DNA of 64,000 nucleotides from positions 2,721,060 through 2,785,059 of the forward strand of contig NW_003314269.1 of assembly GCF_000143415.4 (NCBI RefSeq). Direction: 5' to 3'. The notes under the pieces are model-generated. The model was not told the DNA's origin, did no database searches, and saw nothing but the letters and a program-made list of their open reading frames with translations. The stretch is from Selaginella moellendorffii. Taxonomy: Eukaryota > Plantae > Lycopodiophyta. The translations under genes were made by a program, and so were the position numbers. How positions within the stretch are numbered: position 1 is the first letter of the stretch; each line of letters starts with the position of its first letter. Below, piece after piece: positions 44,579 through 63,705 of the stretch.

Positions 44579-47500
44579 TTATGTATACATGACTAAATCC
44601 AACCTTAACGTACCAGTGGCAACTAGCTCGAGTAAATCCTTTAGCTTTTTCGCGTTAAGAGGTTTGCTAATGTACCCATCCATTCCAGCAGCTATACAGC
44701 GATCTCCGTCCCCGGACATGGCGTGTGCCGTCATTGCAACTATAGGAGTTCTCACTCCACTGCTCTTCTCAAGCTCACGAATTTCCCTCGTGGCCTGGAA
44801 ACCATCGCAAATTGGCATTTGAACCTGGATTTTTCACAAGAAAGTCTCAAACAAAAATGTAGATGAAGAAGAAAGAACTTACATCCATCAAGACGAGATC
44901 GAAAAACTCTTTTGACGATTGCTCGACCGCTTCGCTACCATTGCAAGCCAAAACGGTTGCATGACCCCACTTCTGTAGCAGTGTCATTGCAACCCGCTGG
45001 TTCACGACATTGTCTTCTGCTACCAAAATCTTGAGGCCTTTGGATTGTCCCTCAGGGATTTGCTTGAGCGATCTTCCCTGGAAAATATTCAGGCATAAAA
45101 TCAAGACAAACAAAAAACTCCATTGCATTACCTGTGGCTCCTGAGAGACAATTTCAGGATCTTCGGGAATTCCTAGAGCGGCATTTAAAGCTCGTTTTAA
45201 TAGAGCTCGTTTGATTGGCTTTGATGTGTGGACGTCAACACCTATCTGCTTACACCTGGGAGAAAAGCACGAAGTGTGCCATGAATAAGCAAAAGGAAGA
45301 ATGAAGAGATTGTACCTTGCTGCGTCCGAGTGTTCTAGAGAAGTAAGCATGACAATAGGAAGCATTGGAGTGTCTTTGAGATTTTGGTCCAGACACTTAG
45401 TACCTTCGCTTGGCGTCGAAAAGTTTTGCTCTGCCACTTGAGACTTGGAACTTTGAGCTGGTGATCCCCGATGCTTGTGGATGATTCCATTGGGGAGTTT
45501 ATTGTGTCCACGTATCAATATCGATGGACACTCGGGCTCCACTTCATGGTCTCCGTTACACAGCCTATTGCAGTGTATAGTCTGTGAACTGCTGCTAACA
45601 CCACTGAGGGGTCTCGCTGTGCTCCGGCTCTGGATCAAGCTTGGATTTTCTTGTAAACTCTTTACCAAGTCAGTAGCACTCGTCCCTTTCAGCCACATAT
45701 CGAGGAGTAAGACCCTAAAAGGCTGGCCTCTTTGAGCAGCTCTTTGGAAGGCCGAAAGAGCATCCTCAACACCATTTGCGGATTCCACAACCATTCCCCA
45801 CGCCTGAGTAAAGAAAAATAAAAATGAGGTGGAAGTAATGAAACAAAAGCTTGCCAGTCTTTTACCCTGAGCATTCGAACAAGGATGTCTCTGCTCGTTT
45901 TGTTGTCGTCCACCACCAGGGAGGAGACGTCTTTCAAGCTTTCCACGCCTAGAGGCGGCGAAGTTCCAGGCACTGATACAGGGACATGAAATGTAGCCGT
46001 GAAGTAGAAAGTACTTCCCTGCCCTTCACTTTCCACCCACATTCTTCCTCCCATGGCTGCAGCGAGCTTGGAAGATATCACGAGTCCTAACCCGGTTCCT
46101 CCATACAACCTTCAGTAAAAGAAAAAACCATTAGAAACAAGCCTTTGCAAAAACAAGGACAAGGAAAATAACTACCTCGTGGTGGAAGAATCCACCTGTG
46201 AAAAAGCCTGGAACAGTAGTGACTGCTTGTTCTTCGGGATTCCCACTCCTGAAAAAACTCAATTAGATGGATCCAAATGCTCGACTTGTATATACTTACC
46301 GGTATCGTTCACTGAAAACAGTAGTTCAACAGTTTCTTTGGTTTTGTTTTGAAGCTTCGCAAGAACCACGACTTCTCCGTCCTCCGTGAACTTAATCCCG
46401 TTACCTTTAGAGAAAGAAACGCTAAAAAGTTAGATGCGAATCCAATCTGTGTCTGAAAGATACGCTGCGTACCAATGAGATTGACGAACACTTGAAAGAG
46501 CCTCCCAGGATCGCCAACTATCTGATCAGGAACATCGGCATCAGCACTCCAAGCTAGCTCCAGGTTTTTCTTGTGTGCCCGTGCTGCTAGAACTGACACA
46601 GCGTGCTCTAGCTGGTCATACAACGAGAACTGGATGTCTTCCATCTCCAGCTTTCCAGCTTCTATCTTGCTGAAATCTAGAATGTCTGTGATTATCCGCA
46701 ACAAATGCTTCGCAGAGAAGCGCACCTGATACAACGAGGCACCCAAGTTGGTCACTCGAATCAATCTAGCTACAAGCTTGAACTTGATCTTACGTACAAG
46801 TTCCAGATATTCTTGTTGTTCTGTAGACGTCTGAGTGTCCAGGCACAGCTCCGTGCAGTTGATGATTCCGTTCAAGGGAGTGCGAATTTCGTGTGACATG
46901 TTTGCGAGGAACTCCGACTTGGCTTTGTCAGCTGCGACGGCTACATCTTTGGCCATTTGTAGCTCCATCTCCATCCGCTTTCTCTCCTCGATCTCGGTCG
47001 CCAGAATTTCATTTGCTCGAGCAAGATCTCGCGTTCGCTCTGCAACCTAGAGACAGTAGGCTTAGTATTATATGAAGTAAAAGATACACGACGAAGAAAC
47101 CTTTTGCTCCAACGTAGAGTGATGGTCAGATATCTGATCTGCCATGCTGTTGAAAATTCCCTGCAGGTCATGAATTTCATCCCGAAACCAGGCTGAGTTA
47201 CTCTTGACTCGAGCTCCCATGTCACCACTCCCAAGAGCCGCTGCTACTTTCCCAAGCTCGATAATCGGTGCGGTGAAAACCTGCAATTGCACGTTAAAAA
47301 AATAAACGAAGAAATGTTTTTCCTTCTACCTTTGCAAGGCAAAGAGAAGCGATGATTCCAACGACCAGAATCACCACTATGGTGACCACAATAACAATTT
47401 GTATGTTGGATATTGGTGCGTAAGCTTCTTTGATATCGAGCTTTGCAAGAAGACCTGCAAGTCAACCAAAGATTTTAGAACAGAATAAAAAAACCAAACC

Positions 47501-48702
47501 AACAAGCTCACCCCAGTTCAGGTATCCAACTGGAGCGTAGGCGACGATAACTTCCACTCCTCTATAGTCTCGCTCTCGTCGAACTCCAGATAGTCCGCCT
47601 ATAGCACTGGCCATGGAACCACTGAGAGGAACCGACGTAACACCGGGATGAGCTTGCGGAGGCAACAAGAGGTGTACAGTTTTATTCTCAATAGGCACCC
47701 CTACAATCAGCTCGCCAGTGTTCTGGAGCCCAGTTCTGTCGTGGATTAACGTCTTCAACGTTGTCGCATTAATCAACGCGGTCAGCACTCCTATCATGGT
47801 CTGATTCTGTAGAGCAAAACACGAAAAGAATAAAAAACAAAGGTTATAACTACTATGCAAAGTCAAAACCACGCTAAGAAATCCAAAACCAGGAAGAACA
47901 AAGACATCTTACCAGCATAATGGCTCTAGAAATGTTATACTCCCACAGCTTGTCACGCAGTTTCGGGAAAGCGATCTGTACAGGCGCGGTCTCCACAAGC
48001 TTATAATCCTGGTGGGCGAGAGATGGACTGAAAGTCTGGTTGTTGCTCGTCGCAAAGTGGAGCGAGCCTTCCTTGTTGTAGACAGCAGCACCCGTGATCT
48101 CCGAGATGGCAGAGATGGCCGACTGGAGGTCATACTTGGCGGTCTCCCGCGTAACTCCCGTGTTTGCGAGATTGTTAACGATCTGGATTCTGGAAGCGAT
48201 GAGCACCATCTTATCGATCTCGCCCAGCAGGTAGTCATTGAGTTGCTCTCGCCGGAGAACCGAGACTGCTGCCAAGCGCCGGCCAATCTCGTCAGCTAGC
48301 TGCTGGTGTGTCTTAAACCATAGAACAGCAGCTAGAACTCCAGAGGAAGATACGACCTGTAAGACGAAAAGAAAAAGATAGAGAAACTTTGCGTAAGTCT
48401 GCCACCAACATAAAGAAGCAGGCGAAAACAAAACATCAAAACGAAACAACGAGCAAGAACTTGAAAGAAAGAACACTTACCACAATTCCAATGAAGAGCG
48501 TGAGCTTGAAAAGAATGGAAGCTTTCAAGCTCATCTTCTTGCTGCTCCGGCTGGATTGACAGGCTGCGCCAGCCGAATTGTTGGGATGATCATCGGGAAC
48601 CGGGAGGGTGACGTCTGACACTGCTCCATTGATCTTGCTGGCTTCGTGGCGTTGCTCGAGAGCGCCACCAGTGGAGCTCTTTTGGAAAGCCAAGCACACC
48701 AT
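44579..48702 (-). CDS. Membrane hybrid histidine kinase: TM-Cache-like-TM-HAMP-HisKA-HATPase-REC-REC (multi-exon)
   Basis: H box [45 protein letters not shown] and [12 protein letters not shown]-like [16 protein letters not shown]...[17 protein letters not shown]. Two receivers (VVDD..LLD..KP; AEDN..LMD..SKP). The start may extend to ~48870. Confidence 0.92.
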
Positions 48703-50590
48703 GACTGATGGATTTGATGACGATCGAGTAAAAGCTGGCGATGAGGATGAAGTAAGGGGAGGAGGAGGAAGATTGAGCTTTGGAGATTGCTGCTTCCTGA
48801 ATGGAGAGCTCAGATTGCGCCCATCGTCATCAGTCTCCCTGTCCAATCCAACCCACCAGGACCAAACCTTCTAAGAAAAAGAGAGAGAACAAAGTGGAGG
48901 TGAAAGAGATTGACATTTTCCCTCCCACGAACAGCAATAGAAAGCAAGCGGGGATAAGGGGGGGGAGGAGAAAAGAGAAAGAAACAAACCCCACGGGAAC
49001 TGGTAGCTACAAAACCCTGAATTTCGAGCGCTCGCCGCCCGTCGCGCGACCGATCGCCTAGAAAACTGGAATTTCTCTCATCAATCCGTGAGAAAAAAGA
49101 TGAGCGATCTCGCCATAGTCAACAAACATCGGCTTCCGCGAAGCCGCGTCGCAAAGGCGATGTGCTGCGTTGTTTGGTGCCCTGAATTCGCGCGCAAAGG
49201 AATCACTCGTGAATCTGCCCGAGCCAGCTCCCAAAATCTCCCCCCACTTTCCCCTCCTCCCTCCTCGTCCCCTCTAGCCCTAAAATTTTGTTTTGGTGTG
49301 GCAAAACGAGCCACTCGAACATCACTGGAAGAGGACCGCTAGTAGTAGAGAGAAACACATTCACGAGTATATTCCAGGCGCATATTCTTCTCGTCTTCTG
49401 CCCAGATTATTTAATGCGGGCGTACGGCGCATGTCCGTTGCTGTTGAGCCCCACCGGCGGGTAACGTGTCCTTGCCGTACTGGCCCATTTTTTCGTTTTT
49501 ACCGCTCTGGGGCTCCACCAACTTTACTTCCATGCGAAAGACGAGTGATTAGATTTTCGATTATAAGTCAAACCCAATAGTGTTGTCGTTTATAAGTACC
49601 TTCTCCCATGCATGAAAAAGAATGAAAGCTTATTTTATTATCCTCACCATAGTCTCCTCTAAAGAACATTCCACCAACTTATATTAGCGCTAATTATCTC
49701 TAGAGAGAGAGAGCATTTAAAAGGTGGCGACCTATGACTTGCCAAAGATTTCGACGTCAAACCTCCCATGTTTGATGCAATGTGGTGTTTTACCTTCCTA
49801 GTAGAGCACTTCTCTCGGCCCCATACATATGCAGAGTTTGCAGAGTTTGTGGCAAAAGAGTTCCTATGTTTTGCTCAAGGTGGGTGGAGTGACAGATTCC
49901 ACAGGGCCCTTTTTTATTTTTTATGTTCTTGGAAAAAGGATCACATTGTCAAGTGGTGAACCCATTTCAAAATGCTATGTTGCTGTCTTGAAAAAATGAA
50001 ATGTAATAAATACATAATAGGAAGATAAGAGCTGGAAATAAAAGAGAATGGGTGATTTTGGGCTCCACAGTCATCAACTCACGAGCTTGTCATTTGACCC
50101 TCTACGGATGTTACACTACGTCTCTTCCATCTAAATGTAGTGCTGCTCGAGAGAAAGTCTTTGTCGTCTGGAGGCAAAGAAGCTCCCACCAAGAAAAAAG
50201 GAATTTTCCCTTGTCAAAGTTCTCGACCTCGACGGATGGAGAAATCGAAGCTTACATTATGAAAAAAGAGGAAAAAGAAAGATATAATTCCACAAGGACG
50301 TTTTTTTGTGTCCGAGTAGAGTGGTCCTCCTTGTCTATTAAAGCCGCATAACGTACGAGCCTCATGGCCATTCTTCATAGTAGCAAGTTTGTTTCCAGCA
50401 GCGTGGACGCTTCCCCGGATCATCTTTATGCCACTCGCTGGAAACCAATCGAGGCGTGAGCCTTGTCTGCCGAGAATTCCAAAACTTGGATTTCCTCGAT
50501 CGATGTGGCCGATCAAGTTATAGCGAGAAGCGTACCTTGTTTGTTAGCCCACTTTAAAGTGTTTTCGTTTCAAGCTTTTGTCTATGCTCG

Positions 50591-52923
50591 CTAGTCTGGA
50601 TTTATGAGAAGCTGGATCTCCTCGAGCGATTTGCCTTTGGTCTCGATGATGAAGCTGTTTGCAAAGGCGACGGTGGCCAAGGAGACGGCACCGAAGCCAG
50701 TGTAGACCGCTGGAAGGCCAAACGCTTGAATCGCGGTCAGGAAGAACAAGCCGATGAGAAAGTTGGACACCTGTAGAAATAGAACATGAGATTTTTTCTT
50801 TCTTGATACGAAAGAACACAAGAAGAGTGAAAAGAGATCACTCACCCAATGCACGCACAGGCTAAAAGCCATGATCTTTGCTCGGCTTCTCGTCGTGCAT
50901 AGCTCGGGGATGATAATACCTGTCACTGGCCCAGCTCCAAGAGCAAAGGTAAACATATATCTGTAGAGGACAAAGCTCAGTACTGGAGATCATCAAAGTC
51001 TACTACAAAGAAAAGCCTGGAAACTACAGAAGAACTACTAGATGAACGTTCCACGTACGTGAGTGTTCCAATCACGGAAAGTAAGTGCGCTACGGAGTCG
51101 TCCATGGGGGCCTCCAATGCCACTACGAGCACAGCCATGGAGATCGCCTACAAACGTGTTAAGAACAACAAGTGTTTCGAATCGAGCCTAGTTATTTGTT
51201 TTGTACCATGCCAGTGTAGCTGATCATTAAGAGCTTTCGCCGTCCTTGTTTGTCCATGAGAGACGATGCTACCAGCGCCCCTGCGAAGAGCCAAGCCATT
51301 GTAAACAAGAACACAGCCAAGCTTGAAAGACTACCCGCAAAGTTGACAACGCCAACGGCAACGCTGGCTGTTAATCCATCGCTAATCCCAGCGTCGTGGA
51401 AAGTCGAGGACGAGAAATACAAAACCCCGTTAATCCCCGCGAACTGCTGAAGGAAGAAGAGGGAGCCACCTATGAGTGCCACTGCGAAGAAATCATAGAA
51501 AAACATGAAACAAATTAAGAGAATGAGGGAGGAAACTTAAGAACCTTTTCGGTTTTGTGCGAGCAGGAGTTCTCCCCACGACGCTTGATCTTTCTCGCCA
51601 TCTACGTCGCTGGATCTTTTCAGCTCCTGGATCGCTTGCTCCACTTCGGCCTCACCCCACAGTTTTTTTATCGTGGAAAGTGCCTCTTCCCATTGTCCGT
51701 TCTGTATAGATACTCCTTGCGAGAAGTTTTAAGTACCTTTGAAGAGAAAAAAGCTTTTGCTTACTCTTGCGAGCCAGCGAGGGCTTTCCACGGCGAACTG
51801 CATTGCGACGATGAGCAATGCGGCAGGAACCGAGCCAATCCAAAACATTTCTCTCCACCTGGAAAAAGAAAGTATAAAATGTGTTTTTTTTTTTCCATCG
51901 TCGAAGTTGACGGAGTTTACTACCAGTGAGGATCGGTTTGTGCTGGAATTCCAAGGAGCAAAGAGACTATAATCCCGGTACACGTACCAATCTGGCATAA
52001 ACTACACAAGGCGCCTCGATACTTTGTGGGAGATATCTGTAAAACCAAGCTCTAAGATGTTAAGGAAAGAAATCTACGTGAAAAGTAGCAAACTCTACGA
52101 TCAAAACTTGCGGAAATAGAAAATCAAAAAACTATCACCTCTGAAATGTAGAGAGGAACGAGCGAGGTGTTGATCCCAATGCCGAGCCCCACCAAAGCCC
52201 GACCGATGAGCATTTCGTTAACTGTGTGAGCATTCGCACTGCATTCACACAAACAAGTCAGAGCAAGAAGAAACAAGAGGCAAAGAACACGACCAAGAAC
52301 TAGAAAAGAGCAAACCTGATAGCAGGCCCCAGGACGAGCGGGATCATATCCAGCTGGAAAGTTCTACGTCGTCCAATCTTGTCCGCTAGAACACCACCAC
52401 TTACGCTCCCAGCAAACGCACCCACAATGAAAATGCTCACCACGAAGCCTTGCATTATGGTGTCCCCGTCAAAGCCAAGCTCCCGGGCAATGGATTCCAG
52501 CGGTCCATTGATAACACTGCAAACCAAAAACTTAGAGCTCAAGAACACGCGAAAGAGCTCACCCAATGTGGTAACCAAACATGAAGTTCGCCATGGCCGC
52601 CGTGAGTACGTGCGGCAAAACAGGAACCCATCCGACGTCCGGATCGCCCAAATCGATGGAACTCTCCGGCTTGGTTGTCTTCGAAACATCTTCTAAAGAA
52701 GAAGAACGAGCCACAAACTCTAGCTAGTGTTCTTCAAGGGAAAGTTAAAAACCTTACCTTGTTTCGATGATAGCGTCTTGTCCTCCTCGCCAATCTTCGC
52801 ATTGGGCACTGCTCCAAAGCTCCTCCTTCTGGACCTAAATCCGGTTAAGTTTCTAGAAGAAAAGAAGGAAGAAGACGAGACTAAGGCCTTGGAATGGAGA
52901 GCTAGAGTGCACAGTGTTGCCAT
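50591..52923 (-). CDS. Plastidic glucose transporter-like (pGlcT-like, sugar porter MFS), multi-exon
   Basis: Ser/Arg-rich transit-like N-terminus, FGYHIG|VINGPLESIA, ADKIGRRRTF, LQQFAGINGVLYFSS, MDKQGRRKLL and ETKGKSLEEI. Confidence 0.92.
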
Positions 52924-53952: not shown

Positions 53953-55172
53953 ATGGTTCAAATGCCGGTGGCGACGACGATCTTTGCCACCAACAGCAGC
54001 ATCCCGGAGCAGAAGCTCCTGAGCAATTCAGCTCCTTTTCCAGCGGTTCTCAAGCCGAGTTCCTCCGAGTCGAGCGACAAGCGGAGCCTTCTGCTAGCGC
54101 TGGAGCAGCCCGGCGGCAAATCCCTGCTGCGAAACGAGCTCGCCCGCAGCGGAGCGGTCCTGCTCCGCGGGTTCAACCTCGACTCCGCTGCCGACTTTGA
54201 CGAGCTTGTGCAGCGCCTCGACGGCGAGGAGTTCCCCTACAGCGTCGGGGGAGAGGCGACCCGGCAGCGAGTGCTGGGGAGAGTCTTCACCGCCAACGAT
54301 GGAATCCCGCTCCACAAGCCCATCGGCTTCCACAACGAAGTCGCTTATGTATGTTCCACTCATCTTCCCTTTTCGCGATGATACTGACTTTCTGCCTGCC
54401 ACCAGCTTCCAAACTCGCCATCGAGGATTGTTTTCTTCTGCCAGAGCCCCGCTCCACAAGAGGCTGGCGGAAGCACGCTAGTTGCTCACGGAAGAACGGT
54501 GTATGAGAAACTTGTGGAGAGTGGACACGAGCACTTCCTCGAGGAGCTGTCGCAAAAAGGCGTGAGATACTCCAAGAAGCTGGCCCAGGGAGGGCATGGG
54601 AGCTGGAAGTCTATGTTCCAGACGGATGACAAGCTTGAGGCGGAGCAAAGGTATCCACTTGCTGTCCTCCCTCCTATCATTGCTTGGACCCGAGTTTTCC
54701 TTTCTGTCACTCTCTTTGGTTTTGCTTTGCTTCGCGTCCAAAGCTGCTTGGTCATCTTTGCCTCAAAACTTCTTTTTGCTGCCTCTAACCAGCTCCGTTT
54801 TTTGTTTCCAGGGCCGAGAAAGTTGGTTCCAGAATCGAGTGGCTCGACAACGACGAGGCTCGTTTCATTTCCAATCCCTGCCCCGGCGTGAAGATCAATC
54901 CACACACTGGCGAGAAAGTCTGGTTCAACACCATCGCCGGCATCCAAGTCTTCAAGGCCTCCGCACCCCCGGGATCCTTTGATGCTTACTTTGGAGATTG
55001 CTCTCCCTTCCCCCAGGATGCTCTGGATGCCTGCCTGCGGATCCTGGACGAGGAGAAAGTTGCCTTCCCCTGGCAAAAAGGAGACGTCCTCATCGTTGAT
55101 AACGCCAATGTTCTTCACGCCCGGCAGCCTTCCAAACGGCCGAGAACTGTTCTAGTCTCCCTGTTGAAGTGA
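53953..55172 (+). CDS. Clavaminate synthase-like TauD/TfdA Fe(II)/2-oxoglutarate dioxygenase, 3 exons
   Basis: SGAVLLRGF, VFTAND, IGFHNEVAY (HxE), VWFN and WQKGDVLIVDN.NVLHAR motifs. Confidence 0.9.
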
Positions 55173-57601: not shown

Positions 57602-59011
57602 CTAGCCTTCGCCTCCAAAAAGATCCATGAATCCTCCTCCATCATCTTCTTCTTCCTCGTCCTCTTCTTTCTTCTCCTCTGTAGCAGCCACCACAGGAGC
57701 AGTGCTCGATTCCTCCGGCACCAGAGCTACAGCCACGGCAAACTTGCTTGGATCCTGCACGAGGCACTAAACACGTCAAACCAAGAACACCACCTAGGAC
57801 GAAAAACAAAAGAAGGCCAACCAAGACACTATCTAGAAATCCAGAAGCTAGAAATCCCAAACGAGGTACCTTCAAGTACTCCTTGGCGTTCTCGGCTTGC
57901 GGATACGAGTAGTCGGTGCTCAGCGCAATGGCCAGGACGTTCTTGTACGAGTTGAGGAAGAAGTGCGCGGCGGCCGCCAGTGTCGGGTAGCCGAGTGCGA
58001 GAGAGATGGCCGCCACCGCCGAGACTCCTTCGGCAAACTTTGCGACGAGGTCGTCGTCGGTGAGGTCGAGCACGGCGGGATCAAACACGGAGCCACTGTC
58101 GTAGACTCTGCGGACGACGAGTCCGTAGGAGAATGGCCGGATTCTCAGCTTTGCCAGGAGCGCTGCCTCCGAGGAGCCGACTTTGGTGCCTTTGCTGATG
58201 AGCTCCACGGAGGAGACGATCTCCACGGTCCCCTTGTTGATCTTCGTCGGGATATTCAGCGCCTAGAACAAGCGGCCAACTTAGTTGATATACCATATGC
58301 TTGATCACGAGATAAAAAATATAAATTCTAGAGTTTTTACCTGGAAGAAGGATGTGTGTGATGGATCGAGGCCAGTGCTTCCTGGCTGAATCGTCACGTC
58401 GATCGGAGCGACGAGGCCAACTCTAGCAGGCGCTCCAACCTTAGGAAAAAGAAAGACAAAGCTCAAGAATCCTTGAGAAGATCGATCGGAAGTGAAAGAA
58501 CTTACCTTGTACTTCGCGATCACCTCACGGACCTCCTTAAGATCTCCTCTAGTGAAGACAAGCCCGACGTTTCCCTACAATGAACGAATGAACCTAGATC
58601 CAAGGCAGCTCCAAAATCCCATCAAGAAACCACGACATCGCCAAGAACACATCCAAGATCGAAGAGAGCCGCAAGATTTCGACAGGAAACGCGGCGAGGA
58701 GCGATGAAATCACGGGAAATCACAAAGATCACGCGCACAGGCAGATTTCTCACCACAAGGAGAGGAATGAGGTTGAGAACATCCCTGTTGCCCGTCTTCT
58801 CGGCGTACTTGCGGATCGTGCGCTTCATCAGCGTGTTCTTCCCCATGAGCACCACGGAATCGGGGCGGAGGCCCTGGCGGATCTGCTGCATCTGGTTGGA
58901 TCCAACATTGTCCGCCGCGCAGATCAGCGCCCGGGCGTAGTCATCAAGGTACTTGCAAAGCTTGAGATCGTAGGCCTCCTTCTTCTCGAGCTTCGTCCCC
59001 TTGAACCCCAT
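57602..59011 (-). CDS. RPP0: 60S acidic ribosomal protein P0 (uL10), multi-exon
   Basis: [56 protein letters not shown], and an Ala-rich then acidic tail ending [19 protein letters not shown]. Confidence 0.96.
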
Positions 59012-59143
59012 CGCCAAAAAAGCTAGAGGTTTTTGCTAGGGTTCTAGGCTATTTAAACAGCAAGAAAGCGCACTGACGGAATATCCAGAACAACACTTCA
59101 CGCGACAGAATATGCCTCGATGCTAAAGAAGACGGAATGTGCC

Positions 59144-59925: not shown

Positions 59926-61896
59926 TCAAATTGGAGACCCAGAGATCCAGGCATTCGACAGCAGCAAATACGGCACTGAGTTCTCGGGATCGAGCGACGA
60001 CGCGAGCCGCGCGGCTAGCGATCCCTGCTCCACATCCGCCTGGACATTGCAAGCGCCCAGCAGAATCGTCCAGGCCACCGAATCGGGCTCAAAGGGCATG
60101 CTCTCGATCAGATCCTGGGCGTGATCCAGCTGCCCAGTGCGCGCCAATTGATCTACCACGCACATATAGTGATCAAGCATCGCCGCCACGCCAAAATCCC
60201 CAACGAGCGAGACAAAGTAGCCGACGGTATTCTCTACAGATCCTATACGACCACACGCAAGGAGGACGCTCACGAATGTGACGGTATTGGGTTCGAATCC
60301 CTCCCACGCCATCGCCCGGAAGAGCCCCAGTGCTGCACGCCCATCCCCGTTTTGGGCACAAGCCGAGATAATCCCGTTCCACACGGGGAGCCCTAAATGG
60401 GGAGTTTTTGCAAACAACGACCTCGCGGCTGCCACGCGTCCATTTTGCGCGTACCCCGCGATCATTGCGTTCCACGAGACGAGGTCCAAGTGGGGCATCT
60501 TATCAAACACCTCCTTGGCTTCCTCCACATGCCCCTGTTGGGCAAGGGCCCCAACCAGGGCAGTCCACGCCACAAGATCCCGCTCCACCATACCGTGGAA
60601 TATCCTCCGCGCATCTTCCAGTCTCCCGCGCTGGGCGTGCGCGACTAGCATCGCCGTCCAGGCCAGGAGGTTCTTCTCGGGCATCCTGTCGAATATACTC
60701 TGCGCATCTTCCAGATGCCCTCTCTGGGCATATGCCGCGAGCACGCATACGTAGGTCGCGGTGTCCGGCTCGAGCATCCGATCGAAGAGCCGCCTAGCGC
60801 GGGAAATCTCGCCCAATTGGAGGAACCCATTGATGAGCGTGTTCCAAGACGCGGACGCGCGGTTGGGCATTCGATCGAACAGCCGCTCCGCCTCTGCCAG
60901 ATCACCGCTGTCGATGTAGGCGGTAATGAGCGCGTTCCAGGACGTGATCCCCGGATTAGGGCTGCGATCGAAGAGCTCCCGGGCCTCGGCGAGGCGCCCG
61001 TTGGACGTGTAGCCCGCGATGAGCGTTCCCCAGGCCTCGGGGGTCGGGTGTTCGAGTCGCGCGAACATCCGGACGGCCTCGTGGAGATTCCCATTCCGGG
61101 CACACGCGGACATCATCGCGTTCCACGTAACCGGGCACCACCGCGGCATGCCGCGGAAGATTCTCTGCGCATCTCCGAGATGCCCGTTACGGGCATATGC
61201 TGTGACGAGGCCGGTCCACGAATATTCGTCGTGCTCGGGCATCTCATCAAAAACTTGTCTTGATTCCGCAAGATGCCCGTTTTGCGCCAGCGCTGAGAAG
61301 AGCGCGTTCCAGCAAACGCTGCTTCTTTGGGGAATCTTTTCGAAGATACCACGAGCTCTGTGTAAATGCCGGTTTGAGGCATATGCTGTTGCAATGGCGT
61401 TCCAGCAGACTTCGTCTTTGCGAGAGATGGTGTCGAATACTTTCTTCGCCTCCTGAACGAAACCGGCTTTAGCGTATGCGCCCATGATCGCAGTCTCGGA
61501 TATAGTGCTTCGACTGGGCAGCCAGTCGAAGATCTCTCTTGCAGAACGCAATTGCCCTGCACTGGCAAATGCGGCGATCATCGCGGTCGCGGCCACCGGA
61601 TCCCAACGAGGCATCCGATCGTAAAAGATTGCAGCTGTGGAGAGAAACCCAGTTGTCTGCGTGTGCGCTGAGACGATGATGTTCCAGGAGAAGATGTTTC
61701 TCTTGACCATCGAGTCGAAGACACAGCGAGCCTCGCCGAGTTTGCCACACCGGGCATACATGTGAATGACAAGATTGTTGAAGAACGCCTCGGCTCCATG
61801 GCTGGAGCTGGCGATCTGGGCGTGGAGAGCCTGGGCTTGGACGGGATCTCGGCATTTTCGGAGGAGCTCAGCTGTGGCGTGCCGATCAAAACGCAT
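59926..61896 (-). CDS. PLS-class PPR protein with E domain
   Basis: Intronless 656 aa with long runs of 31-aa repeats and MPFEPDSVAWTILLGAC...PYLLLSN. Confidence 0.93.
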   Translation of the reverse strand: MRFDRHATAELLRKCRDPVQAQALHAQIASSSHGAEAFFNNLVIHMYARCGKLGEARCVFDSMVKRNIFSWNIIVSAHTQTTGFLSTAAIFYDRMPRWDPVAATAMIAAFASAGQLRSAREIFDWLPSRSTISETAIMGAYAKAGFVQEAKKVFDTISRKDEVCWNAIATAYASNRHLHRARGIFEKIPQRSSVCWNALFSALAQNGHLAESRQVFDEMPEHDEYSWTGLVTAYARNGHLGDAQRIFRGMPRWCPVTWNAMMSACARNGNLHEAVRMFARLEHPTPEAWGTLIAGYTSNGRLAEARELFDRSPNPGITSWNALITAYIDSGDLAEAERLFDRMPNRASASWNTLINGFLQLGEISRARRLFDRMLEPDTATYVCVLAAYAQRGHLEDAQSIFDRMPEKNLLAWTAMLVAHAQRGRLEDARRIFHGMVERDLVAWTALVGALAQQGHVEEAKEVFDKMPHLDLVSWNAMIAGYAQNGRVAAARSLFAKTPHLGLPVWNGIISACAQNGDGRAALGLFRAMAWEGFEPNTVTFVSVLLACGRIGSVENTVGYFVSLVGDFGVAAMLDHYMCVVDQLARTGQLDHAQDLIESMPFEPDSVAWTILLGACNVQADVEQGSLAARLASSLDPENSVPYLLLSNAWISGSPI

Positions 61897-62393: not shown

Positions 62394-63705
62394 TCACATA
62401 AGCGAGCACGCGTTTGGGTTCTCGTCGCTAAAGTACTGCGGCGCTATGATCCTCACCGTCTCGAACTGCATTGGAGGCTGGTTGGACAGCGTCCATGGCT
62501 CCGGCTCCGGTCTGTAGTAATCCCTCTCCCTCTCCTCATATCTTTCCTCGTATCTCTCCTCCTCCTCTTCCTTCTTCTCCTTCTTCTCCTCCTTCTCTTC
62601 CTTCTTCTCTTCCTTCTTCTTCTCCTCCTTCTTCTCCTCCTTCTCTTCGGCCTTCTCCTCTTTCTTCTCTTCTTTCTTCTTCTCCTCCTTCTCTTCGGCC
62701 TTCTCTTCTTTCTTCTCCTCTTTCTTCTCTTCTTTCTTCTTCTCCTCCTTCTTCTCTTCGGCCTTCTCTTCTTTCTTCTCTTCTTTCTTCTTCTCTTCCT
62801 TCGTCTCTTCCTTCTTCTCTTCCTTCTTCCCTTCCTTCTTCTCCTCCTTCGTCTCTTCCTTCTTCTCCTCCTTCTTCTTCTCTTCCTTCGTCTCTTCCTT
62901 CTTCTCTTCCTTGTCCTTCTTCTCTTCCTTCTTCTCTTCCTTGTCCTTCTTCTCCTCCTTCTTCTCTTCCTTGTCCTTCTTCTCCTCCTTCTTCTCTTCC
63001 TCCTTGAACTTCACCTCCTTGTCCTTCTTCTTCTCCTCCTTCTTCTCTCCCTTCTCTTCCTCCTTGAACTTCACCTCCTTGTCCTTCTTCTCCTCGCCCT
63101 TGTCCTCCTTCTTCTCCTCCTTCTCCTTCTTCTCTTCCTTCTTCTCCTCTTTCTTCTCCTCCTTCTCCTTCTTCTCTTCCTTCTCTTCTTTCTTCTCCTC
63201 TTTCTTCTCTTCCTTTTTCTCTCCCTTCTCCTCCTTCTTCTCCTCCTTCTCCTTCTTCTCTTCCTTCTTCTCGGATTTCTCCTCGTCGGATGATTTCTTC
63301 TCCTCTTTGGGTGGCGGAGGAGGAGATGGCCAGAAATCCGCCTGCTTTCCCGTCTTCTTGGCCCTCTTGAGCACCTCCTTGGGATCCACAAACCCTTTAA
63401 CCGTCACCTTTCCTTCGTTGCGATTCACGTCCAGCGACATAAGCCCTGAGAACACACCATCAGATCGAGAAACACGCGAAATTCGCGATAAATTTCCATA
63501 CCTTTCACCTTGTTGAGCGATTTCTTCACCTTCTTCTCGCATCCCAGGCAGTGAATTTTCACCTTGAGCACCACAGTCTGCGAGCACGAGATGAATTGGA
63601 TTCCAAATCCAGCCAAAACCCCTCACAGAAACATAAACACTCACTCACCACGGGCTCCAGCGGCTTCGCATCCTCCTTCTCCTCCTTCTTCTCCCCGTCC
63701 CCCAT
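62394..63705 (-). CDS. Heavy-metal-associated isoprenylated plant protein (HIPP) with a long E/K tract, 3 exons
   Basis: Exon 1 MGDGEKKEEKEDAKPLEPV, HMA domain TVVLKVKIHCLGC...VTVKGFVDP, C-terminal FSDENPNACSLM* (CaaX). Confidence 0.93.
62530..63310 (-). repeat. Coding purine-rich low-complexity repeat (KEEKK-like units)
   Basis: Nearly pure C/T tract on the + strand. Confidence 0.95.

Follow-up and report, generated by a model that had tools for sequence, protein, structure and literature searches.

Nearly all that is known of plant two-component receptors comes from seed plants and concerns those for cytokinin and ethylene together with AHK1, CKI1 and AHK5. Here we describe a hybrid histidine kinase gene, LOC9635761, of the lycophyte Selaginella moellendorffii, which lies on the minus strand at 44579-48702 of a stretch of 64,000 nucleotides (NCBI RefSeq assembly GCF_000143415.4, contig NW_003314269.1, positions 2,721,060 to 2,785,059 of the forward strand; the whole stretch is called the window below, and positions are counted within it). 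According to our analysis, this is a transcribed gene for a two-pass hybrid kinase, which belongs to a dCache_1-HAMP family of Zygnematophyceae, mosses, Selaginella and ferns, is probably of bacterial origin and, by analogy, would act as a small-molecule receptor; we assign this reading as a whole a probability of about 0.8.

Kinases with related sensors have been reported before. Upadhyay et al. 2016 (PMC4822843) assigned the ectodomain of Sln1 to dCache_1, placed CHASE, the sensor class of the cytokinin receptors AHK2-4, in the Cache clan and stated that plant and fungal Cache domains are limited to histidine kinases thought to have been horizontally transferred, so that plant Cache kinases have already been catalogued. 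The sensors given in a 2026 survey of streptophyte histidine kinases are CHASE, MASE1, GAF and PAS, and that survey has no Cache or HAMP clade (PMC13730384). Kabbara et al. 2019 described SmoelHK12 and SmoelHK15 of Selaginella, one moss kinase (PpateHK38) and two Klebsormidium kinases (KniteHK29/44) as NarX-like nitrate/nitrite sensors, which are reported to share a topology of transmembrane (TM) segment, sensor, TM segment and HAMP and to be absent from Marchantia and seed plants, and were suggested to derive from a bacterial transfer (PMC6324907). The domain kinds of the kinase described here are thus well known, and its class may have been catalogued previously under another name.

Gene, transcripts and domain architecture

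The splice model, built from the three-frame translation, comprises 14 exons and 13 introns, all of them canonical GT-AG and 49-124 nucleotides (nt) long, and gives a coding sequence of 3243 nt on the minus strand, with the ATG at 48702 and the stop codon at 44579-44581. An in-frame stop is found upstream at 48871-48873, and the ATG at 48702 is the first one thereafter. The features of the gene are the following, with residues numbered along the protein.

44579..48702, minus strand: entire coding region of LOC9635761, the hybrid histidine kinase gene, with 14 exons and 1080 residues, according to the splice model and spliced contigs
48481..48702, minus strand: exon 1, residues 1-74, cytosolic N-terminal tail and first half of the first TM segment (TM1)
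47913..48356, minus strand: exon 2, residues 75-222, remainder of TM1, stalk helix and membrane-distal Cache module
47512..47806, minus strand: exon 3, residues 223-320, membrane-proximal Cache module, corresponding to dCache_1 profile positions 143-235
47330..47454, minus strand: exon 4, residues 321-362, end of the Cache domain (EAYAP motif) and second TM segment (TM2)
47101..47280, minus strand: exon 5, residues 363-422, HAMP (29.5 bits for the exon alone, cut-off 25)
46798..47046, minus strand: exon 6, residues 423-505, coiled coil for signalling and N-terminal half of HisKA, which includes the phospho-accepting H474 at 46891-46893
46473..46725, minus strand: exon 7, residues 506-589, C-terminal half of HisKA and beginning of HATPase_c, including the N box
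46300..46404, minus strand: exon 8, residues 590-624, HATPase_c up to the G1 box
46176..46248, minus strand: exon 9, residues 625-648, HATPase_c, F box
45866..46109, minus strand: exon 10, residues 649-730, G2 box of HATPase_c, linker and start of the first receiver, REC1 (D716, D717)
45316..45803, minus strand: exon 11, residues 731-892, REC1 with the phospho-Asp D765 (45699-45701), the disordered insert (45366-45629) and T884
45132..45255, minus strand: exon 12, residues 893-934, end of REC1 (K905) and linker
44883..45077, minus strand: exon 13, residues 935-999, first half of the second receiver, REC2, with E955, D956 and the phospho-Asp D999 (44883-44885)
44579..44824, minus strand: exon 14, residues 1000-1080 and stop, second half of REC2 (T1031, K1053), with no HPt after it
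47447..48296, minus strand: double Cache (dCache_1) ectodomain, residues 95-323, crossing introns 2 and 3

Contigs of four public sequencing runs were placed on the gene, and three of these runs, from three studies, gave joints. The joints skip exactly 58, 54, 60, 62, 66, 51, 68, 72, 54, 49, 57, 106 and 124 bases at the predicted introns, so that all 13 are reproduced exactly by spliced contigs, which shows that the gene is transcribed and that its splicing follows the model. A single contig of 3593 nt crosses all 13 joints; it extends from 48900 to 44619 and ends about 40 nt before the stop codon, whereas others continue past the stop to 44576 and 44529 and contain no further joint after the last exon. 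Around exon 1, the contigs are unbroken from 48479 to at least 48900. In addition, 20 public runs from eight studies contain about 0.4-0.6 of the sampled words of the gene stretch, as expected for runs that hold exons only.

The transcripts differ from the window at 15 coding sites within 44618-48643, of which five are silent and 10 change an amino acid; one of them, 46831 C>G (Q494H), is present in all three runs. They may reflect differences between strains or alleles, or errors in the assembly. The spliced product is letter for letter identical to the NCBI entry "uncharacterized protein LOC9635761" [Selaginella moellendorffii] of 1080 residues (P0001), which means that the gene is already annotated, as uncharacterized, and its Pfam domains are already precomputed in the database searched. 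The initial annotation of the window, made by a model from the letters and their open reading frames, had placed an intron-containing plant hybrid histidine kinase at 44579-48702, and the splice model, the contigs and the identity with LOC9635761 bear it out; the protein motifs that it quoted all occur in the spliced product.

The sensor part of the protein is delimited by two TM segments, which hydropathy places at about residues 63-89 and 339-361, on either side of an ectodomain of about 250 residues. The arrangement of TM1, ectodomain and TM2 is as initially annotated, while the ectodomain is somewhat smaller than the roughly 270 residues given there. Since the ectodomain sits between the two TM helices, with Lys/Arg residues preceding TM1 and HAMP following TM2, the predicted topology would place it outside the cytoplasm. 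It carries N-glycosylation sequons, one of which, VNAT, is kept in 23 of 26 family members.

Pfam detects dCache_1 at residues 95-323 of the full protein (E 2e-9, 37.6 bits, profile positions 4-238 of 240), and the ectodomain scanned alone matches the same family (PF02743) with 42.2 bits and E 9e-11, both scores being below the curated cut-off of 45. In a confident structure model, the ectodomain consists of a long helix at the N-terminal end and two PAS-like alpha/beta modules after it, and fold searches with this model returned dCache_1-type domains throughout the first 50 matches listed per method. HAMP (PF00672) covers residues 360-413, directly after TM2, which ends at about residue 361, and scores 25.8 bits on the full protein against a cut-off of 25. 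Scans of the exons, the ectodomain and the full protein with Pfam gave no match to CHASE (PF03924) at E up to 1, nor did Pfam return any sensor family of the PilJ/NarX type at the same threshold. Searches of solved structures with single ectodomain exons yielded nothing useful, an ectodomain profile found weak dCache matches there (best E 1.5e-4), and NCBIfam gave generic kinase and HAMP matches only. The Cache and HAMP input part that had been expected for this protein was thus recovered by Pfam and, for the Cache domain, by the structure model and fold searches as well, and the possibility that the ectodomain would score as CHASE was not realised.

The cytoplasmic part encompasses HisKA at residues 464-529 (79 bits) and HATPase_c at residues 576-687 (85 bits), followed by Response_reg in two stretches (128 bits), all on the full protein. 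The kinase boxes are present (H474, N591, G1 with D623 and G2 with G652), and the signature residues of the receivers are D716/D717, D765, T884 and K905 in REC1 and E955/D956, D999, T1031 and K1053 in REC2. These catalytic and receiver residues are kept in every land-plant member of the family, and the zygnematophyte members deviate solely in the second acidic residue of REC1. When scanned alone, REC1 scores 47 bits for Response_reg. Its model is a canonical five-stranded receiver with a predicted local distance difference test (pLDDT) score above 90, broken between helix 3 and strand 4 by a Ser-rich insert at about residues 789-876, which is modelled with low confidence, is predicted to be disordered and is 51 to 279 residues long in relatives. 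No Hpt domain was found in the protein by Pfam, and its chain ends 16 residues past REC2. The coiled coil, HisKA, HATPase and two receivers of the initial annotation are accordingly all in place, both receivers have the acidic pocket, phospho-Asp, Thr and Lys, and the low-complexity insert in REC1 is real, at about 90 rather than about 100 residues.

Range and descent of the family

We searched 1.84 billion cluster representatives exhaustively by phmmer with exon 2, which encodes the membrane-distal half of the sensor, and only 20 of them matched at E 0.001 or better. The family comprises a second Selaginella gene, LOC9658361, which is 61% identical in the sensor and 64% in the cytoplasmic part, and members in ferns (Ceratopteris, two Adiantum species and Pteridium), mosses (Physcomitrium with two loci, Ceratodon and two Sphagnum species) and Zygnematophyceae (Spirogloea, Mesotaenium and several Closterium strains). 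The identity of the land-plant members to the Selaginella protein is 50-54% for the sensor and 53-61% for the kinase-receiver part. Among annotated proteomes, neither the exon 2 search nor the word and profile searches detected a member in seed plants, and the same searches gave none for liverwort, hornwort, Klebsormidium or chlorophyte. No match above about 480-520 bits is missing from the lists obtained with the kinase-receiver part and with the first 800 residues, and moss and fern orthologs score 700-800 bits; a similarly conserved ortholog from any of these groups would therefore have been listed. Our first word search missed the zygnematophyte relatives, and its silence on seed plants alone carries no weight. 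The notion of a receptor class of non-seed plants is supported by this distribution.

Two cases among the matches call for comment as gene models. In Mesotaenium, the full-length ME000202S02767 (P0018) and the sensor-less kinase-receiver copy S02769 (P0141) have near-adjacent gene numbers on one scaffold, which suggests a tandem duplicate of which one copy has lost the sensor. A protein of 384 residues (P0013) that matches the ectodomain exon is a chimeric prediction with retrotransposon chromodomain and SH3 parts, and is probably a gene-model artefact or a transposon inserted beside a family member.

A maximum-likelihood tree of the region from TM1 to HAMP unites all streptophyte sequences in one clade (100/100), in which the zygnematophytes fall outside a land-plant clade (100/100) that consists of the mosses (100/99) and of the lycophyte plus ferns (93/75). 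This order follows the species tree and therefore argues for vertical inheritance since before the split of Zygnematophyceae and embryophytes. The streptophyte clade is in turn joined with bacterial sensors (100/99), and further bacterial dCache-HAMP proteins, among them some of Nostoc and Anaerolineae, surround this joint clade. A wider sensor tree with the colinear bacterial proteins groups 15 plant with 24 bacterial sequences in one clade (99). A tree of the kinase-receiver part with bacterial matches gave plant monophyly (100) and no resolved bacterial backbone.

The closest non-plant relatives are bacterial, and those with names are mostly Planctomycetota. In a profile search with the first 800 residues, P0260, from the metagenome-assembled genome (MAG) GCA_964430385.1, is 41% identical over 92% of the query; P0266, P0270-74 and P0281 are 34-37% identical and colinear over about 90% of it; and P0295 of Rosistilla ulvae, annotated as "BarA", is 36% identical over 70%. 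The named colinear bacteria are, besides Rosistilla ulvae, a Pirellulaceae MAG (P0271) and a Planctomycetota MAG (P0273), and another sensor relative clusters with an Isosphaeraceae protein. P0260 is located on a dense, intron-free bacterial contig, where it adjoins a DUF1501 gene; the DUF1501 family is much expanded in Planctomycetota. According to Pfam, P0260, P0266, P0271, P0273 and P0295 contain dCache_1, HAMP, HisKA, HATPase_c, two Response_reg stretches and Hpt, while P0281 has the same domain set with one receiver stretch. Hpt is present in six of the seven bacterial look-alikes scanned, the exception being P0262, which also has PAS instead of HAMP. Bacterial sensors of the same clade exceed the dCache_1 cut-off (50.4 bits for P0266, 54.3 for P0271 and 49.0 for P0295).

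Conservation between plants and bacteria peaks in the stalk helix and the membrane-proximal module (motifs TGLxxTGE and W-GL-AK-D-EAYAP), whereas the membrane-distal module is conserved within land plants and not with bacteria. This pattern fits a common signalling mechanism with a different ligand.

We infer that a streptophyte ancestor took up a whole bacterial kinase gene. Introns and the REC1 loop would have been added to it later, and the HPt domain, the job of which is done in plants by free AHP proteins, would have been lost. Since every non-plant relative is bacterial, a transfer from plants to bacteria is unlikely. The suggestion of the initial annotation that the gene is ancestral, or horizontally acquired and then intronised, fits the monophyly of the plant sequences, their species-tree order and their position inside a bacterial dCache-HAMP clade.

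Proposed function and competing explanations

By analogy with bacterial dCache_1-HAMP kinases and with the multistep phosphorelays of plants, a small molecule in the apoplast would bind to the membrane-distal Cache module, and its binding would displace TM2 so that HAMP rearranges. The coiled coil would pass this change on to the DHp helices and thereby alter the autophosphorylation of H474, from which the phosphoryl group would move to D999 of REC2 and then to free HPt proteins and response regulators. We can only guess at the role of REC1, which with its complete pocket around D765 might be a second acceptor that competes for the phosphoryl group, or else a gate on REC2; its disordered loop would, again as a guess, be a likely site of regulation. 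More tentatively still, with rather more doubt than confidence, we consider a scenario in which the apoplastic receptor was taken whole from an unorthodox kinase of the planctomycete type before Zygnematophyceae and land plants split, was kept for about 500 million years or more, works beside the cytokinin receptors on the same AHP proteins and response regulators, and was lost in seed plants.

The family is a further class of plant receptors with an intact signalling chain. As Physcomitrium, a tractable moss, has two of its loci, it lends itself well to the search for a ligand. It would also be a well-resolved case in which the streptophyte line acquired a complete bacterial receptor gene at about the time of terrestrialisation. 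It may further correct a published functional label, that of nitrate sensing.

A number of points weigh against our reading and should be considered with it. The entire mechanism is drawn by analogy from bacterial kinases and plant phosphorelays. The dCache_1 scores of 37.6 to 42.2 bits stay below the curated cut-off, and the absence from seed plants holds for annotated database proteomes as distinct from genome searches. All trees are unrooted and are built from streptophyte and bacterial sequences, the comparison with AHK1-5, CKI1 and Sln1 having been made by similarity ranks and by the solved-structure search. The inside of the sensor clade shared by plants and bacteria is a polytomy; in the kinase-receiver tree, the bacterial backbone is unresolved and the closest bacteria are not named. 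Planctomycetota are suggested as the donor by the names of a few metagenomic proteins only. The kinase and two receivers match the cytosolic fragment of an AHK4-type receptor (7p8e), and on the strength of this sequence match an origin shared with the cytokinin receptors is possible. Finally, the 15 differences between transcripts and window, 10 of which change an amino acid, give no sign of population-level constraint and are too few for claims about selection.

The ectodomain could instead report strain in the membrane or cell wall, with no small ligand involved, and the protein would then be an osmosensor or turgor sensor like Sln1 or AHK1. The layout of TM segment, ectodomain of about 250-300 residues, TM segment and hybrid kinase is indeed shared, the Sln1 ectodomain is dCache_1 in the literature (PMC4822843), and we recognised no known ligand motif in the ectodomain. 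Nevertheless, we consider this explanation unlikely, given that the exhaustive exon 2 search and the word and profile searches returned no fungal or angiosperm match, which makes the likeness architectural only, that the closest structures are ligand-binding domains of chemoreceptors and kinases, and that land plants show good conservation of the membrane-distal module, as expected for a binding pocket. The resemblance to Sln1 and TcsB kinases initially annotated is one of architecture only, as no fungal protein appeared in any search. Strong similarity to bacterial kinases might bring to mind that the assembly is contaminated with bacterial DNA, or that a transferred gene persists as a dead relic, and we deem both next to impossible. 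They were rejected because 13 spliceosomal introns are removed in the transcripts of several studies, because the kinase is flanked on both sides by plant genes, its neighbours in the window including PPR, Sugar_tr, uL10 and TauD genes, and because the reading frame and the catalytic residues are intact and orthologs are conserved from algae to ferns.

The remaining two explanations would assign the protein to an already named sensor class, and both appear very improbable to us. For a NarX-type nitrate/nitrite sensor, as proposed by Kabbara et al. 2019 for kinases of Selaginella, moss and Klebsormidium, the coincidence is that exactly two Selaginella kinases of that topology were reported (PMC6324907) and that the present family also has two Selaginella loci; the NarX model of NCBIfam matches the HAMP exon only, and weakly (E 0.015). 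Against this, the modelled ectodomain is a double-Cache alpha/beta fold and not a four-helix bundle, and no NarX or PilJ-type sensor family was matched at E up to 1. SmoelHK12 and SmoelHK15 may be genes of the present family, in which case the NarX label would, according to the structure model, be wrong on the fold. A divergent cytokinin receptor of the AHK2-4 or CHASE class, whose sensor drifted past recognition, would account for the order of kinase, receiver and receiver, for 7p8e being the best solved-structure sequence match (281 bits) and for the precomputed match of two fern members to the CRE1 first-receiver family PF24896, and CHASE itself belongs to the Cache clan (PMC4822843). It would leave unexplained why HAMP is present and CHASE gives no match at E up to 1, why the first 50 fold matches listed per method, all dCache_1-type, contain no AHK4 sensor, why no AHK is found among the 120 best kinase-receiver matches, where bacterial kinases appear at 50-57% identity, and why REC1 retains its phospho-Asp.

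Neighbouring genes and known receptor classes

The genes found around the kinase are the following; Rfam gave no match in the window.

50591-52689, minus strand: intron-split sugar/major facilitator superfamily (MFS) transporter directly upstream of the kinase, with Sugar_tr matches on three open segments
53953-55172, plus strand: TauD/TfdA-family dioxygenase gene of two or more exons
57642-59017, minus strand: gene for the ribosomal protein uL10 (acidic protein P0), with at least two exons (Ribosomal_L10 match)
59926-61896, minus strand: intronless gene for a pentatricopeptide repeat (PPR) protein of 656 residues (PPR 346 bits), typical of the large Selaginella PPR complement
62394-63644, minus strand: open frame of 416 residues, mostly Glu/Lys-rich (EEKK) repeats, ending in C-S-L-M, a possible prenylation box

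The short N-terminal part of the last frame resembles a heavy-metal-associated domain, with no Pfam match at E 0.001, and its product may be a HIPP-like protein.

Among receptors with related sensors, the solved bacterial dCache_1 domains (PctA/B/C, Mlp24, CtaA, TlpA, Tlp1, DctB, KinD and mmHK1S/vpHK1S) have the closest folds to the Selaginella ectodomain, but their sequences are only 9-18% identical to it. By eye on the alignment, the R-x-W-Y stretch and later Asp that form the amino-acid-binding motif of the PctA domains appear to be missing. Sln1 and AHK1 share with the Selaginella kinase the layout of TM segment, large ectodomain, TM segment and hybrid kinase, but no sequence kinship of the ectodomains was detected in the searches, the matches of which include no fungal or angiosperm protein. 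Sln1 and AHK1 have one receiver, and we know of no report of a Pfam HAMP domain in either of them. With the NarX-like kinases, the present family has in common that there are two Selaginella members and none in Marchantia, while a Klebsormidium member was not found here.

The cytokinin receptors AHK2-4 are likewise membrane hybrid kinases, in which an outward Cache-clan sensor between two TM segments is followed by the kinase, a first receiver and a second receiver. In sequence searches of solved structures, the best match of the cytoplasmic part is 7p8e, which aligns in three stretches, and the next one is 6qrj, a "Hybrid kinase" that we take to be Caulobacter ShkA, with the same two-receiver order. 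The Selaginella protein differs from AHK2-4 in that its sensor is dCache_1 and not CHASE, HAMP follows TM2 and REC1 retains all phospho-acceptor residues; its family, unlike theirs, was not found in the annotated proteomes of seed plants.

The kinases of the planctomycete type have the same order of TM segment, dCache_1, TM segment, HAMP, HisKA, HATPase_c, REC and REC, are of similar length and have sensors that fall in the same clade. They end in an HPt domain, which the Selaginella protein does not have, whereas the Selaginella gene is set apart from these bacterial look-alikes by its 13 introns, the disordered insert of about 90 residues in REC1 and the N-glycosylation sequons of its ectodomain.

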